32,000 bases of DNA, taken from positions 416,107 to 448,106 of the forward strand of contig NW_008806279.1 in NCBI RefSeq assembly GCF_000400465.1. The letters run 5' to 3'. This DNA is from Wallemia ichthyophaga EXF-994 (Eukaryota; Fungi; Basidiomycota). The translations under genes were made by a program, and so were the position numbers. Below the pieces are notes generated by a model. The model did not search any database, was not told the origin of the DNA, and saw only the letters and a list, made by a program, of their open reading frames with translations. Positions 6,007 to 31,878 of the stretch are shown one piece after another (positions within the stretch are counted from its first letter, which is position 1; each line of letters opens with the position of its first letter).

Positions 6007-8808
6007 ATGCCGATTCCGCTGCCGTTACTCCCGCTCATCGCAGAGACTGTTTACTACTCCAGCAGACCTGCAATGGATCTCGATCCCGTCCCAGAGCCTG
6101 GCCGCTGGACCGAGCAAGACGCACGTCACACGCTCTACGCCTTATCGCGCGTCAATAGGGATTGGCACGATGAAGCAGGCAAGTTTCTTTGGCGCAGGCT
6201 TCACTTCAGATTGGCTGGTGGTTTTCTCTCTGTCGTTGACGTCGTCGCAGGCAAGCAGGTTGAGCAACTCCGGCAGCAATCTGATGAGATTATCAGATTG
6301 TCATCGCCACCGCCAGATCCTGTGAGACCAGAAGCTATTCTCCCAGACGGACCCACTCTGCCACGTCCCTACCGCCAATCCTCGCTTAGAATCGCATCTA
6401 TCCCCGAGTCTTCTGAAGACACGCGCAGTGCTCCTCCCGCACGCCCCACGCTCGACACCTCCCGCAACGCTTTCTCCCCGCCTTCTTTCACCAATGAACT
6501 CGCCACGCCCGTCACTTCCCCTCTTTCCACATCGCCGCCTGTCAGCTCACCGCTCAACGTCCCATCAATCAGCTCCACCTTCTTCGCCCATCCACCCATT
6601 ACCCAAGAAAACACTCCCCCTTCGTCCCGCTCGCAGTCCCCCTCAGGGGCCAACTCTCGTGGCCGGCGGCGTTTTCACGAAGGCCTCATCAGAACTGCTT
6701 CTGCCCATACCTCCTCTCGTGCGCGCAGCATGAGCCCTGCCAGAGACATGGACGTTGATGAAATGGTAAATGCTACCACTGAGGCGCTTAAACGGGAGTC
6801 TGAGAGCATCACGCGCACCCACAGTCCCGAAAAGCGTGGTAGGAAGTTCGACCGTGTTCGCGAACTCTCCGTCGAAGCCGAGCGACTCCGTAGTGCCAGC
6901 CCTGTCACTGTTAATCTGCACGAGAGCCGCCACAACAACACTATCGCTATTCGTGAGCCTAGTCCGGAGCGTGAAGGGCTAGCTGAGATGTGAGAGGGTG
7001 CTTTATGTCAATGAGTTGACCGCTAACTATCAGACTATTAATACAGGCGCGAGCAGAGTCCAGATGAGCATGATAATGCTTTGTGGGGGAGCAACTACAA
7101 CTCCACATGGCTCGATCCCTTCTGTCCAGTCACCGCAACTCCTTACCCTGCACGTCACATCAACCACATCTCCTTCACTTCTTTCCGCACAGCCGGCCTG
7201 AGGCGGTCTATAGCACAGGGCACCGAAGAGCGGTTCTGTACTCCGGAGCGTCTCGAGCGTCTCCTCGATGTATGTCGGGCTGTGCGGGGGTTCGGAGCGA
7301 GTGAGTATATGGATTCCGCGCTTAGTTTGCCAGTGCTCGAGTCCTTGCTTCTACGCGAGCCTCCCGCGCCGCAAACTCACCGTACACGACTGCGGCGAGC
7401 ATACTCCGTCCGTGACCCGCCCACGCAATCCACAGTTGACGACGAGGGGGCCAGTGGGAGTGGCAGTAGCAGTAGCAACCTTCACATCAACTCTTCCGGT
7501 GCGAGTCTCTCCCGTGCGAAATGTATTCCAGGTCGTTCGCTGCATGCTCTAGACCTGAGTGGATGTGTGAGCGCGACATTTTTCGACGCGTTGGAAGCAT
7601 TCGTCAACAAACACCTCTTTGCACGCCAATCGGATGCTTTTGATGAGCAGGCCGATGAGCGCTATCCTGACGATGTGCGCGCGCGCTCTCTAGCCTACAA
7701 GAGCACAGCACATGCGCATCACCGTCCCCCTTCCAACCCACACACTGGGCGCTACAGTGCATTACGGCGACTGAATGTATCCAATGTGGTGAATGTCTTC
7801 TCACCTACCTTGAAAACATTCGTATTGGCTTTCCCCGCTCTTACTCACCTCGATTTGTCGAATACACGCGCTACACCCGGACTCATACGTGCTTTGGCAC
7901 GCTCACCCACGCTCCGCTTGGAGTCTTTTGCTGCTGCCCGCTGCAAGAAGCTAGATGGGGACTGTCTCCTTCGTCTTCTCGTCGATTCTCCCGTGACGGA
8001 GAATCTACGCGAGTTGAATCTGTACGGCGACAGTGCGGTACCATCTCCACTAAGTGTGTATGAGTTGGATGTAATTCTGCGTCGTGCGCCCTGCTTCATC
8101 AGTGGAAATCTCCGTTATATAGATCTAGCCGGTGCGCCATTGACCAAAGAGATACTGTCGAAACTCGCCGCGCAGCCTCACCTCCGCAGTCTCGGTCTCG
8201 CCAATATCCCTCGTCTGCCTCTCGGCGCTGTGGCGGAGTTCATCAAGAACAAAGCGCCCGGTTGTGAGATAGTCGATCTCGCATTGTCTACACCAGAACT
8301 GGCTGTTATTCCGGGAGTATCATCAACTGTGCGCTCGGCAGTTCTCACGCTACAGACTAGTTTTATTAAGGTGCTCACTAATCCTCCCTTTCACTTCTCT
8401 CTCACGTCCCCATCTCCAGTAGAACAATCCCCACCGCCAACTGCCATACGCGTTATCGAACTTGGCGCTGAAATGCTCAATGCTCTACAGGGTGGCGCTG
8501 GCTCGTGGAGAGTAATTCGCTCGCGTGGTAGGAGAGGCTGGTATGTTGACGTGTCCACCAAACCACTCGAGGATGGCCTGCTTGCTAGGAAACTTGATAA
8601 GAGTGACCCTTGGAGACAGCAAATGGAGAGCTTGTCCCAGGCTAGAGGTAACGTTGCCTCCTACATCGGTTGGCATTCGAGGAAGATGGAGGTGAGTGGG
8701 TCGTATGTTCTAATACCACGCTAACAATCGCAGGTCCTCTCTGGTCAGGGTATGCTCGGGCGCGAAGATGGGCTATACGGCGTTTACGCCTATTCTACTG
8801 GTCTGTAG
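6007..8808 (+). CDS. Fungal F-box/LRR (RNI-like) protein with long Ser/Pro/Arg-rich insert, 3 exons
   Basis: Exon 1 from 6007 (MPIPLPLLPLIAETV...LYALSRVNRDWHDEA.KFLWRRLHF, F-box-like). LRR-type repeats LHALDLSGC, LRRLNVSNV, LTHLDLSNT, LRELNLYG, LRYIDLAGA. Intron about 8692-8733, final exon VLSGQGMLGREDGLYGVYAYSTGL* (TAG 8806-8808). Confidence 0.75.
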
Positions 8809-28400: not shown

Positions 28401-28650
28401 GTCAGCTGGTACGGCATTCGCGTTGGAAATTTTCGATCATTGGGCTATTGTTCCAGGCGATCCTGTCGATAGCGGCATACAGCTCAGACTGCTCGAACCA
28501 GCTCCTGCTCAACATCTTGCTCGCGACTTCATGCTCAAAGTTAGACGTAGAAAGGGCCTCGGTGATGGTCAGAACCTTATGGCGAAATACCTCGACGATG
28601 ACTTCGTTCTCAATATCGTGGCTGCTGGAAAATCTGACCTGCTGTTTTAA
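25481..28650 (+). CDS. SNU114: U5 snRNP 116-kDa EF2-like GTPase, 5 exons
   Basis: [14 protein letters not shown] acidic N-terminus, [24 protein letters not shown]1 [71 protein letters not shown]. Introns about 25690-25738, 26730-26776, 27893-27941, 28030-28078. Confidence 0.98.
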
Positions 28651-28898: not shown

Positions 28899-29558
28899 TT
28901 AGAAGTGGTCGTGTTGCTCATCGTGGTGCATGTCGTGGTGACCATGGCCATGCTCTTTATCGCCGTGGTGATCGTCGTGGTGGCCGTGGTGACCGTGGTG
29001 TTGTGGCTCACCTCTCTTGTGGTGCTCTTGTTCGCGGTGACCGTGGTGATCGTCGTGGTGACCGTGGTGACCGTGGTGTTGTGGCTCACCTCTCTTGTGG
29101 TGCTCTTGTTCGCGGTGACCGTGGTGATCGTCGTGGTGACCGTGGTGACCGTGGTGTTGTGGCTCACCTCTCTTGTGGTGCTCTTGTTCGCGGTGACCGT
29201 GGTGATCATCGTGCTTTCCGTGCTTATCATCGTGCTTTCCGTGCTTATCGTTCATTTCTTTTCTTTGTTCGTTTAATTTTTCACCCCATTCTTGACGTTT
29301 GTGGTGGTATTCGTGAGGGTATCCGTGGTGTCCGTGGTGCTCTTCGTGACCATATCTTTTGAGGAGGCCATCGCCGTGGTCATTGTCTTGCTTATGTCCT
29401 GAGCCAGCAGAGGCGTCCTTAGTGTTAACGTGATAGTTACCATCCTTGCCGTGTACATTGGTGTCCTTTGTACCAGCGTTGTGGCCAGAGTGGTCACTAA
29501 TTGGTCTAGCAGATGCAGCTGCGATGGTTGCGACTAATGCGAGTGTTTGAAGTTTCAT
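28899..29558 (-). CDS. Secreted His-rich Kex2-processed repeat protein (KEP-like peptide precursor), intronless, 219 aa
   Basis: ATG 29558: signal peptide MKLQTLALVATIAAASA; five KR sites; repeat GEPQHHGHHGHHDDHHGHREQEHH-KR twice plus a variant third copy; no Cys. Confidence 0.85.
   Translation of the reverse strand: MKLQTLALVATIAAASARPISDHSGHNAGTKDTNVHGKDGNYHVNTKDASAGSGHKQDNDHGDGLLKRYGHEEHHGHHGYPHEYHHKRQEWGEKLNEQRKEMNDKHGKHDDKHGKHDDHHGHREQEHHKRGEPQHHGHHGHHDDHHGHREQEHHKRGEPQHHGHHGHHDDHHGHREQEHHKRGEPQHHGHHGHHDDHHGDKEHGHGHHDMHHDEQHDHF
28963..29213. repeat. 78-bp coding tandem repeat, about 3.2 copies
   Basis: ctcacc recurs at 29007, 29085 and 29163 (period 78). Only two mismatches seen across the array (28983, 29208), both at synonymous third positions. 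An adjacent 21-bp duplication lies at 29205-29246 (KHGKHDD x2). Confidence 0.95.
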
Positions 29559-29907
29559 TTCAGTTGTTTGAGTTGTAGGAAAGAGAGGAAGAAGTAAACA
29601 ACGCTTTATATCATTCATGTAGAGAATTGTCCTCATAATTCATCGGCCATTCCTAACTTATCTGCAGCGAGAATGTGATCACAGATGAAATGGAGAATGA
29701 AGTTACGTTACACGTTCCAATTTGGCCGTGTATCTGGAAGAAATCACGCGTTGCTCGCGCTGTAAGCGTCAAACTTTATAAAATTTCCAGAACAACTCAA
29801 TTTAGAGTTGACTCAAGTGATCGTCTGCTATCGTTGCAACATCCAACACGTAAACGTAAATGGTAAGCGTGGAGGGGAGTATATTGAGGAATTTCGCTTA
29901 AAGACAC

Positions 29908-31878
29908 ATGCAGAGCAATAAGGCTATTGATCCTGAAAAGTTATTCGCGTTGGAGGAACGCGTCGGTAAAGGATCATTTGGTGAAGTCTACAAGGGGTGA
30001 GTGGGGATCGCTTGTATCGCATCATCACACCCAACAATCGCTACAGGTACGATAAGCGCAATAACTCTCAAGTCGCTGTTAAGATAATAGACTTGGAATC
30101 CGCCGAGGATGAAATAGAGGACATACAAGAGGAAATAAACATATTATCACAAATGGACTCTAAATTCGTTACAAAGTATGTCGGATTGTTGTTTTGTTCC
30201 TTCTAACACGCGCAGATACCACGGCTCATACTTGAAGAAGACTCACTTATGGATTATCATGGAATTCTGCTCAGGTGGCAGCTGCTCTGAGCTCATGAAG
30301 CCCGGCTTGATTAAAGAGGAGTTTATTGCTATCCTTATACGTGAATTACTTTGTGGTTTACTTTACTTGCACAATCAAGGTAAACTACACAGGGACATCA
30401 AAGCAGCAAATGTTCTTTTAAACTCATCTGGCGATGTAAAGCTGGCTGACTTTGGTGTAAGTGGTCAACTCACCTCCACAATGACAAAGAAGAATACCTT
30501 CGTTGGTACTCCTTATTGGATGAGCCCTGAAGTTATCAAACAATCTGGCTACGATCACAAAGCTGATATCTGGTCTTTGGGTATCACTGCTATCGAATTA
30601 GCTCAAGGTACTCCCCCATATGCTGATCTACACCCTATGAAAGTTCTCTTCTTGATACCCAAAAACAGCCCTCCTTCTTTGGACGGCAATTACTCTAAAC
30701 TGTTCAAGGAATTTGTCAGCTTATGTCTACAAAGAGACCCCAAAATGAGACCAAGTGCGCGAGAATTGCTTAAGCACAAGTTCATAAAAGGCGCTAAAAA
30801 GACTTCTCATCTAACAGAGCTGATTGAGCGTTTAGATAGATTCAAAATGGCAGGTGGTCTCTCGAAGTCTGCGAATAAGGGTGATATGCTCGTCGATCAA
30901 AATACTCTAGGTGGACAATCTGAGGACTTGTGGGATTTTGGTACTATTCAGGGTACACAGAGAGGGGGATTTGCACCACAATCCATACGCAATCAACCAG
31001 TTCCACCGCTGCCAACAGACATACCACCTCCAACTCAACAGAATATGCAAGCGTATAATCAGGCTTATGCTCCACAAATACACCATAAAGACTACGCTAG
31101 AACAGCACAAACAAATGAAAAGGAGACCAAACTTAACGAAAACGACATGCTTCGGTCTACATCTCGTATGACAATCGAGGATGGAGTGACAAACCGCTCC
31201 TACAGATCAGGCAGTACTCTGCGGGCAGGTCTCGTGAGAGATAGGGAAATGAAGCAGAGCAAGGAGCGTGATCCACTGCATAATCTCAGCAACAAGCCAT
31301 CGCCATCACCATCACCCACCAAATCCACAATGGGATACGTGGATACGCTTAAAGGTGGTAAGGCTGCTGCTGGTGGTGGTAGGTCAAGCACAGCTTCTAC
31401 TTATAGAGATCTGCCACCGATTCCCAAAGATGTAAAATCTCCAGCCCAAAACAGCATACTTAACACGCCTGACTCATTTATAGGCTCACATAGGAGTGAA
31501 TTGTTGCCAACAGCTGCTACATATGACAGTCCAGTTATTTCAGATGGTATTGGTCCTGGCACGGACAGTATGGCGAGTAGACAGCCACCGCCAACACCAT
31601 ATTCATACCAAGATGATCAAAGCATTAATAGGAGCGATAGTGGAATGACATCGGAGAGCACAGTGGAGTATGATGAGCAAATTCTGGAGCAGAGGACAAT
31701 GCTGGACGCAGTTGTACACCCGGTGCTAGACACAATAACGCGCAAGGTAGATACTGTTGACGCGAATATGGCGGTAAATTCACTCAAGAATGCATTTGAT
31801 ACTGCCGAGGGATTGATACCTGGACTGACGAATTATTTTATATCTGAAGTGGTTGAGTCCGTCGAGAGGGATGAATGA
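29908..31878 (+). CDS. Ste20-family GCK-III Ser/Thr kinase (STK24/25/MST3-like; Kic1/Sid1 group), 3 exons
   Basis: [30 protein letters not shown]|YD...[35 protein letters not shown]|YHGSYL..., [57 protein letters not shown]-terminal helical tail ([24 protein letters not shown]) resembles the PDCD10/GCKIII dimerisation region. Confidence 0.93.

Follow-up and report, generated by a model that had tools for sequence, protein, structure and literature searches.

Thousands of fungal Kex2-processed repeat proteins (KEPs) have been catalogued, and a handful of them have a known function: these are pheromones, repellents, one cytolytic toxin, and toxins that belong to the class of ribosomally made peptides with post-translational modifications (RiPPs). 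Here we describe a gene encoding a small His-rich protein in a stretch of 32,000 nucleotides from Wallemia ichthyophaga EXF-994 (contig NW_008806279.1, positions 416,107 to 448,106 of the forward strand; the whole stretch is called the window). Like the alpha-factor precursor, Rep1 of Ustilago maydis, Ece1 of Candida albicans and the proteins catalogued by Le Marquer (2019) and Umemura (2020), the Wallemia protein has a signal peptide (predicted), a leader that ends at a dibasic site, and tandem modules separated by Lys-Arg (KR) that have no predicted fold. It differs from these proteins in several respects: the cargo contains 30-46% His and is acidic, the repeat is not conserved within the genus, many module borders in the related species are Gly-Pro-Arg (GPR), STE13 dipeptides are missing, and the processing is predicted. 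KEPs as a kind are thus known, and it is the variant with acidic poly-His cargo, mixed KR/GPR ends, a range of one genus and a conserved leader domain that appears to be undescribed. The best explanation seems to be that Kex2 processes the protein to secreted peptides that would chelate Zn, Cu and Ni outside the cell; we propose this tentatively, with a little less than even confidence. We infer secretion, cleavage, metal binding and a physiological role; what the data show so far is an uncharacterised low-complexity protein that is predicted to be secreted, and no more.

The product consists of the signal-peptide-like segment MKLQTLALVATIAAASA, followed by RPISDH...GDGLL-KR, YGHEEHHGHHGYPHEYHH-KR, QEWGEKLNEQRKEMND(KHGKHDD)2HHGHREQEHH-KR, two copies of GEPQHHGHHGHHDDHHGHREQEHH-KR and the C-terminal unit GEPQHHGHHGHHDDHHGDKEHGHGHHDMHHDEQHDHF (Table 1). 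The modules listed in the initial annotation, which was made from the DNA letters alone, match the translation exactly. Their number had to be corrected: the five KR sites delimit six modules rather than five. The 24-mer GEPQHHGHHGHHDDHHGHREQEHH contains 11 His, as had been counted, and its first 17 residues return at the beginning of the C-terminal unit GEPQHHGHHGHHDDHHGDKEHGHGHHDMHHDEQHDHF. The signal-peptide-like segment has Lys2, an 11-residue core (TLALVATIAAA, mean Kyte-Doolittle value 2.17) and small residues at positions -3 and -1; it is kept in all orthologues, and the remainder of the protein is strongly hydrophilic. At the level of the DNA, GEPQHHGHHGHHDDHHGHREQEHHKR is encoded by a tandem array with a period of 78 bp (28963..29213; 3.2 copies, 98% matches, Tandem Repeats Finder (TRF) score 488), and no other tandem repeat of the window reaches a TRF score of 100. 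Lys precedes five of the ten Arg residues, and the probability of this arrangement upon shuffling is 0.00025, or 0.002 if the duplicated unit is counted once. The pattern of repeats and KR sites is more than chance.

Le Marquer et al. 2019 (PMC6339444) define KEPs operationally as proteins that have a signal peptide and no transmembrane segment, yield at least four fragments at KR/RR sites, and contain at least three similar fragments that make up at least 15% of their length. The window protein has a signal peptide and no transmembrane segment, both being heuristic judgements from sequence features; in silico cleavage at KR/RR results in six fragments, and three similar 26-residue units, the minimum number of the definition, account for 78 of the 219 residues (36%). 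The KEP architecture that had been proposed initially is thus borne out. In the same survey (PMC6339444), W. ichthyophaga and W. sebi were found to be rich in KEPs relative to the size of their secretomes, with six KEPs each, and neither species appears on the sheets of species that lack KEX2, KEX1 or STE13. Umemura (2020) counted eight KEPs in W. mellicola. The His-rich protein may already figure in the published KEP catalogues, uncharacterised. A wall protein of the glycosylphosphatidylinositol (GPI)-anchored or PIR type was considered as well and ruled out, as the protein has no hydrophobic C-terminus, no PIR repeat and no Pfam match.

Three further frames are open across the 78-bp repeat. 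The His frame starts with a signal-peptide-like segment, it is annotated in other strains, and dN/dS is low in its N-terminal part; we can therefore conclude that it is the coding frame. The start Met of the window gene corresponds to the start in the NCBI models of other W. ichthyophaga strains. A longer open reading frame (ORF) could begin with an ATG at 29636. This ORF would begin upstream of a TATAAAG box, and its additional codons are not conserved in the relatives; the ATG at 29558 is therefore the true start. For the first 68 codons, comparison with three other Wallemia species gave dN/dS values of 0.05-0.33 at saturated dS: the N-terminal domain is under purifying selection. The His codons are strongly biased: 58 CAC and 3 CAT stand against 93 and 45 in the neighbouring ORFs (Fisher P = 9e-6), and the non-repeat part has 15 CAC and 1 CAT (P = 0.04). 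This bias is compatible with selection for efficient translation, with a contribution of the repeat expansion.

The orthologues were reached via the neighbouring gene for a STE20/YSK kinase, by searching the kinase and fetching the orthologous loci. In W. hederae, in W. mellicola and in a fourth Wallemia species, the slot between SNU114 and the kinase is occupied by a His-rich, signal-peptide-bearing gene on the minus strand. The full gene models of W. hederae and W. mellicola were rebuilt from the annotated spans and lengths, and for W. hederae the model with one intron is the sole solution. The initial annotation had suggested that the gene is a lineage-specific insertion. This idea is ruled out by the synteny, since position and orientation are the same in all three other species. 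The window gene does lack introns, as had been stated; the orthologues have one or two introns, and the absence of introns is the derived state of W. ichthyophaga. The gene is old within the genus Wallemia, and the best reading of our data is that it is single-copy and restricted to this genus. The two introns of W. mellicola (49/50 nt, GTAAGT...GATAG) are nearly identical, and each is located in one copy of an internal tandem duplication of about 440 nt; the intron number thus grew with the repeat. The intron of W. hederae is found at the matching FEHGH position.

Across residues 1-68, 29 alignment columns are invariant (alignment A2); alignment A1 has 31 such columns in total. The conserved domain of about 50 amino acids has the consensus HNAGTKxTxVxGxDGNY(Q/H)VNTKxxSAGSG...DDGxxL(F/L), and at site 1, which follows it, R68 is invariant and preceded by Lys or Arg in all five sequences. 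A counterpart of the His-rich module 2 of about 18 amino acids is kept in all species, and the motif KR-QEWxEE(L/I)N, which contributes to a predicted helix, is kept in four species and is followed by a conserved Lys/His/Asp stretch. The repeat arrays differ between the species. W. ichthyophaga has GEPQHHGHHGHHDDHHGHREQEHH-KR; in W. hederae, GHGHEEHH...HGPR alternates with GFGGEHHGHH...HGPR-ALKR, so that KR and GPR both serve as borders; and W. mellicola has GF(E/K)GEHHEHGHEHGPR units of 16-18 amino acids with mostly GPR borders. The C-terminus of the W. hederae protein (...HEHGHF) is similar to the tail of W. ichthyophaga. The composition is kept across the orthologues, with 27.5-34.7% His, 14-20% Gly, about 19-20% Asp+Glu, no Cys, a pI of 6.4-6.6 and a grand average of hydropathy (GRAVY) of -2.1 to -2.5. 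This is a family in which composition is conserved while sequence, repeat number, type of cleavage site and intron number turn over.

Turnover is also seen within W. ichthyophaga: Strain E3P91 has one KHGKHDD unit fewer, and in strain E3P86 there is one more His-rich module delimited by KR, GEKHGHHGHEHYDEHYDEHRGHDGHH. In E3P86, this module is followed, just before the GEPQ repeats, by an extra in-frame stretch of 81 nt (GTTAGG...GCCAG; L007 3455..3535). The stretch may encode a non-His module (ELGGETFVKNQVDNDMIDAEQSREHGAR), or it may represent an in-frame intron; in either case it is a structural polymorphism within the species. Such variation of copy number and module content among strains, the short-read assemblies that break in the array and the three other open frames would fit a drifting low-complexity orphan without specific function, in which a CAC-rich minisatellite happens to lie in an ORF. 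We give this idea hardly any credence: at least four species have the gene at the same locus at saturated dS, the His frame and 27-35% His have been kept despite a complete turnover of the repeat sequence, the N-terminal dN/dS is well below 1, and the CAC codon bias is strong.

Table 1. Features of the gene for the His-rich protein, its promoter region and its homologues
Feature	Location	Strand	Remarks
Complete intronless coding sequence of the His-rich secreted repeat protein (predicted)	28899..29558	-	219 codons + TAA at 28899..28901
Signal-peptide-like N-terminus MKLQTLALVATIAAASA, residues 1-17	29508..29558	-	predicted cut after Ala-Ser-Ala
Conserved N-terminal domain RPISDH..HNAGTKDTNVHGKDGNYHVNTKDASAGSG..GDGLL, residues 18-66, and first dibasic site K67-R68	29355..29507	-	alignments A1, A2
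Module 2, YGHEEHHGHHGYPHEYHH then KR, residues 69-88	29295..29354	-	if cut, new N-terminus Xaa-Xaa-His
Module 3, QEWGEKLNEQRKEMND(KHGKHDD)2HHGHREQEHH then KR, residues 89-130	29169..29294	-	translation
Two identical 26-codon units GEPQHHGHHGHHDDHHGHREQEHH-KR, residues 131-156 and 157-182	29013..29168	-	78/78 nt identical; inside TRF array
C-terminal variant unit GEPQHHGHHGHHDDHHGDKEHGHGHHDMHHDEQHDHF, residues 183-219	28902..29012	-	16 His, no hydrophobic tail
Sole predicted helix YHHKRQEWGEKLNEQRKEMNDKHG, residues 83-106	29241..29312	-	AlphaFold2, pLDDT up to 86
Divergent intergenic promoter, common to the His-rich gene and the STE20 kinase gene	29559..29910	.	alignment A3, four Wallemia species
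TATAAAG box	29604..29610	-	46-52 nt upstream of ATG at 29558
Conserved 16-nt block TTATGAGGACAATTCT, just upstream of TATAAAG box	29623..29638	-	alignment A3
W. hederae orthologue	L002 6122..7674	-	501 aa, one 47-nt intron
W. mellicola CBS 633.66 orthologue	L003 6387..7652	-	388 aa, two introns
Orthologue of the fourth Wallemia species	L004 (Logan assembly)	-	incomplete, contig ends within
P0124/P0125 homologues	L005 340..654, L006 47..361		ENA metagenome contigs, 28% GC

The mature protein contains 30.2% His (3.1% in the neighbouring ORFs), 14.4% Gly, 19.8% Asp+Glu, no Cys and 5% ILVMFWC; its GRAVY is -2.46 and its pI 6.5. The calculated net charge of the whole mature protein is -9 at pH 7 and +47 at pH 5. 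The predicted peptides have pI values of 6.0-6.3 and net charges of -2 to -8 at pH 7.4, and their charge shifts from -4 at pH 7.4 to about +7 at pH 5. The mature protein is predicted to be intrinsically disordered: a single-sequence AlphaFold2 model has a mean pLDDT of 52 and is coil except for one helix. Since the model is too disordered, a fold search is uninformative.

Clustered His residues bind Zn, Cu and Ni, as known from the tags used in immobilised metal affinity chromatography, from histatins, from Hpn and from the histidine-rich glycoprotein (HRG). With 30-46% His and many carboxylates, coordination of Zn2+, Cu2+, Ni2+ or Co2+ together with buffering and charge switching near pH 6 would be the only chemistry that such a composition obviously offers. 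Moreover, Xaa-Xaa-His and Gly-His N-termini are classic high-affinity sites for Cu(II)/Ni(II). Cleavage is predicted to create the N-termini YGH in W. ichthyophaga, FGH in W. mellicola (module 2) and six Gly-His in the units of W. hederae; the Xaa-Xaa-His position is not conserved across all four species.

The proposed sequence of events would be as follows: (i) The 17-residue signal peptide would direct the protein to the endoplasmic reticulum (ER) and be removed after Ala-Ser-Ala. (ii) In the late Golgi, kexin would cut after the five Lys-Arg pairs, and Kex1 would trim the basic residues. The products would be the conserved N-terminal piece of 49 amino acids, an 18-mer (YGH...), a 40-mer that contains an amphipathic helix, the two identical 24-mers (11 His in each copy), and the C-terminal 37-mer, in which 16 residues are His. 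Processing in W. hederae and W. mellicola would follow this logic too, Gly-Pro-Arg being an added or replacement site there, resulting in arrays of His-rich peptides of 16-28 amino acids. (iii) In the cell wall or the medium, these imidazole-dense and carboxylate-rich peptides would act as multidentate chelators of Zn2+, Cu2+ and Ni2+ for scavenging or buffering, and the charge flip between pH 7 and pH 5 would make metal binding and release dependent on the pH. The N-terminal domain, the best-conserved part of the protein, might act as a pro-region in ER export, like that of the alpha-factor precursor, or be the functional core of the older family represented by the distant relative P0124 described below.

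It is tempting to extend this model to a ribosomally encoded peptide metallophore: through fast turnover of its repeats, the KEP precursor would have evolved into a cassette from which each translation event yields many poly-His/carboxylate peptides, cuts by Kex2 (including those at Gly-Pro-Arg) would create the Cu/Ni-binding N-termini, and the N-terminal domain or the helix would be used for docking or re-uptake. We consider this more specific proposal possible, but doubtful. In another version of this proposal, metal coordination by these peptides would cross-link the cell wall, which is unusually thick. If the metallophore exists, it would be a strategy of metal acquisition or buffering that has not been described in fungi, and perhaps one that adapts Wallemia to substrates whose water activity is low.

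The cleavage sites of the family need a closer look. The initial annotation had made its reading depend on the conservation of the KR sites in orthologues. This conservation is partial: site 1 is kept in 5/5 sequences and site 2 in 3/4 species, but W. mellicola has only three dibasic sites, and its borders are mostly GPR. In silico cleavage at KR, RR and PR (Pro-Arg) gives 6 fragments for W. ichthyophaga, 23 for W. hederae and 15 for W. mellicola; the N-terminal pieces are 20-52 amino acids long, and the His-rich units have 26-37 amino acids in W. ichthyophaga and mostly 16-28 in the two relatives. Kex2 of Komagataella cuts Gly-Pro-Arg (Met-Gly-Pro-Arg in secreted gelatin), the cut is lost in a kex2 disruptant, and Pro-Arg is recognised as a secondary Kex2 site (PMC6624476). 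The Gly-Pro-Arg ends of the units in the relatives would thus not necessarily be fatal to the Kex2 model. Several modules begin with Gln straight after the dibasic site, and peptides of basidiomycetes released by KEX2 have been observed with pyro-Gln N-termini (PMC9769878).

The same sites can be seen differently: the secreted or wall-located protein might remain largely uncut, with dibasic sites that are incidental or of which site 1 alone is used to remove an N-terminal pro-piece, and its long, disordered His/Gly/Asp/Glu-rich chain might act as a hydrophilin-like polyampholyte, i. e. as a water-retaining, pH-buffering or metal-cross-linked matrix component of the thick cell wall that these xerophilic and halophilic fungi have. 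Hydrophilins, as reportedly defined by Garay-Arroyo in 2000, have more than 6% Gly and a high hydrophilicity and are induced by water deficit; the Gly content and the GRAVY of the family agree with this composition. The uncut chain is also suggested by the two His-rich stretches of 127 and 148 amino acids in the W. mellicola protein that are not interrupted by a dibasic site, by the predicted disorder, and by a pI of about 6.5 with a large charge swing within the pKa range of His. Finally, the family is confined to a xerophile genus; Wallemia is the most halophilic and xerophilic genus of fungi, and W. ichthyophaga is the most halophilic fungus. However, KR is statistically enriched and located at the module borders, the repeat units end in Arg with Lys, Arg or Pro at P2 in all three species, and there is no GPI signal, PIR repeat or Cys for covalent attachment to the wall. 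Moreover, the complete table of genes whose expression differs between 10% and 30% NaCl (PMC3849046 Table S6) does not contain the protein, although it was perhaps never predicted in that annotation. Taken together, we regard an uncut matrix protein as rather unlikely.

Several observations weigh against the release of metal-chelating peptides. In W. mellicola, site 2 is replaced by RVR, and given its three dibasic sites, KR-delimited short peptides are not constant in the family unless Pro-Arg is cut; genus-wide release of short peptides would thus depend on this less efficient cleavage. In unfolded substrates, even KR is not always cut by Kex2 (PMC6624476). The clearest purifying selection acts on the N-terminal domain, which itself is not His-rich. 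The absence from the NaCl table, with the same reservation as to the annotation, has to be counted here, too. For the gene neighbourhood, precomputed Pfam lists covered every called gene at a distance of up to about 8 kb in the fourth species, W. hederae and W. mellicola, and Pfam searches covered ten ORFs of at least 180 amino acids in the window: there was no gene for a ZIP-type or other metal transporter next to the His-rich gene. Inspection of the promoter by eye did not reveal convincing elements of the Zap1 (ACCTTNAAGGT), PacC (GCCARG) or Mac1/Cuf1 type.

These negative results bear on the comparison with the zincophores Pra1, Aspf2 and Zps1, secreted fungal proteins with His-rich segments for which extracellular metal capture has been proposed, as it is here for a protein with predicted secretion. 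Pra1 of C. albicans is folded, has a defined Pfam domain and is encoded divergently from the gene for the ZIP transporter ZRT1. In contrast, the Wallemia protein has no Pfam domain, and the divergent partner is the STE20/YSK kinase gene in all four species, with no ZIP gene within about 8 kb. Without a Pra1-type domain, an adjacent ZIP gene or a recognisable metal-responsive element, the idea of a dedicated zincophore is weakened. If the peptides do bind metals, the poly-His cargo would add extracellular metal handling to the functions of KEPs and be the purely peptide counterpart of the protein zincophore Pra1; if they are inert, the finding shrinks to another uncharacterised low-complexity KEP.

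The precursors of ustiloxins and other dikaritins, which belong to the RiPPs, are KEP-like as well, and the KEP types G-3 and G-8 of Umemura have a di-His motif and are linked to DUF3328. The Wallemia loci differ from these systems: the units are much longer and have no Tyr-centred core, and there is no gene for DUF3328/UstYa or another tailoring enzyme in the scanned loci. The absence of an adjacent DUF3328/UstYa gene, noticed initially in the window, was found again within about 8 kb at the three annotated syntenic loci and among the window ORFs scanned.

With histatins, HRG, Hpn of Helicobacter, HRP2 of Plasmodium, plant shepherins and His-rich dehydrins, the protein shares the density of His, the HH/HxH motifs, disorder, a pH-dependent charge and the expected binding of Zn/Cu/Ni. 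The initial annotation had likened the peptides to histatin and HRG. This likeness holds for the composition; the Wallemia peptides are acidic rather than cationic, there is no homology, and the other proteins come from other kingdoms and other biosynthetic routes. The comparison leads to the idea of anionic Gly/His-rich peptides that would become cationic at acidic pH or act as Zn/Cu complexes, like histatins, shepherins and the Gly/His-rich antifungals of insects, against competitors where the water activity of the substrate is low. Other bioactive peptides also derive from precursors of KEP architecture (PMC9769878), the charge of the peptides changes sign between pH 7.4 and pH 5, and the modules turn over rapidly between species and strains, as in genes under an arms race. 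We still consider an antimicrobial function improbable: at neutral pH the net charge of the peptides is negative, they have no hydrophobic or amphipathic segments at only 5% ILVMFWC, and there was no similarity to known families of antimicrobial peptides in Pfam, the HMMER representatives and the PDB sequences.

The DELD family of Serendipita indica (Dld1) comprises small secreted His/Ala-rich proteins that are reported to bind metal ions. These proteins are helical, with alternating His and Ala, they end with RSIDELD, and they have no KR-delimited repeats. The Wallemia protein has neither this motif nor the Ala-rich pattern or the fold, so that the likeness is that of small His-rich basidiomycete proteins with secretion, which is predicted for the Wallemia protein. 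His-rich motifs in secreted fungal proteins have also been noted elsewhere without characterisation, e. g. motif 19 of Rhizophagus.

For many KEPs of basidiomycetes, pheromone-like or other signalling peptides with a cognate receptor have been proposed. The KEP architecture and the identical repeat copies of the His-rich protein do resemble the alpha-factor precursors. However, sequence and length of the peptides vary between species and strains with conservation of the composition alone, none of the KR sites in the window protein is followed by an XA/XP dipeptide of the STE13 type, and a receptor ligand would not typically contain 46% His. A signalling function thus seems very improbable to us. 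Because the composition is conserved while the repeat sequence turned over, a bulk physicochemical role, such as the chelation of metals by the released peptides, is favoured over recognition by a receptor. Whatever the role, the family is a clean natural example of a conserved composition amid the turnover of sequence, repeats, sites and introns. If secretion holds true, the protein would be one of few Wallemia-specific secreted products and thus a candidate for adaptation at the cell surface.

The database searches agree with a narrow distribution. The closest matches are partial hypothetical proteins of W. ichthyophaga of 146-185 amino acids (including P0001 and P0002), and a word-indexed search with the full protein gave only such partial entries; they are partial because short-read contigs (e. 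g. L001 and L007) end inside the 78-bp repeat. Exact look-up in a collection of 15 billion sequences found neither the full window protein nor the rebuilt proteins of W. hederae and W. mellicola. A HMMER search in 1.84 billion representative proteins identified one credible relative outside of Wallemia, P0124 (with its variant P0125), which was retrieved by the N-terminal domain only. P0124 and P0125 possess the signal peptide, the N-terminal domain and an RR site; the module QFNPEEEKKHEVVGKKKEDEDH, delimited by RR, occurs in them once or twice and is repeated in P0125, and they have no His-rich array. A matching module, KR-QEDEEKKHAVVGKKKEEEDHQHH, is present twice in W. mellicola and also in W. 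hederae; it was lost in W. ichthyophaga. The metagenome contigs that encode these relatives are far more AT-rich than any Wallemia locus examined. A HMMER match of 2137 amino acids (P0123) was rejected as a sum of low-complexity repeat matches. With the N-terminal domain profile, the word-indexed search returned only P0124 and missed the known Wallemia proteins, and it is thus unreliable for this family. A scan of the JGI metagenomes with this profile, and the PDB sequences for the protein, yielded no relative. In Pfam, neither the window protein nor the two orthologues had a family match beyond noise at E-values up to 10. The searchable literature contains no paper that links Wallemia to His-rich proteins, and four diagnostic peptide strings are not printed anywhere in it.

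The genes in the window are ordinary ones, and their order is as follows: fasciclin protein, Trs65, Mob1, 2-hydroxyacid dehydrogenase, polyprenyl synthase, V-ATPase subunit d, SNU114/EFTUD2, the His-rich gene and the STE20/YSK kinase. SNU114/EFTUD2 (plus strand) ends at 28650 and the STE20/YSK kinase gene (plus strand) starts at about 29911, in agreement with the neighbours named initially. SNU114 and the His-rich gene thus converge, and the His-rich gene and the kinase gene diverge, with 352 bp between the start codons of these last two. In this intergenic region, the 16-nt block TTATGAGGACAATTCT is kept in W. ichthyophaga, the fourth species and W. hederae, and W. mellicola has no clear counterpart; the block is a candidate for a regulatory site. 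The aligned Wallemia promoters also have in common an ACGCGT (MCB-like) motif near 29748. Rfam and tRNA scans of the window gave nothing. Elsewhere in the window, the stretch at 6007..8724 is GC-rich (0.56-0.58, with a mean of 0.486 for the window) and contains two long ORFs on the plus strand, of 328 and 547 amino acids, which have no Pfam match and are both rich in Ser, Pro and Arg.

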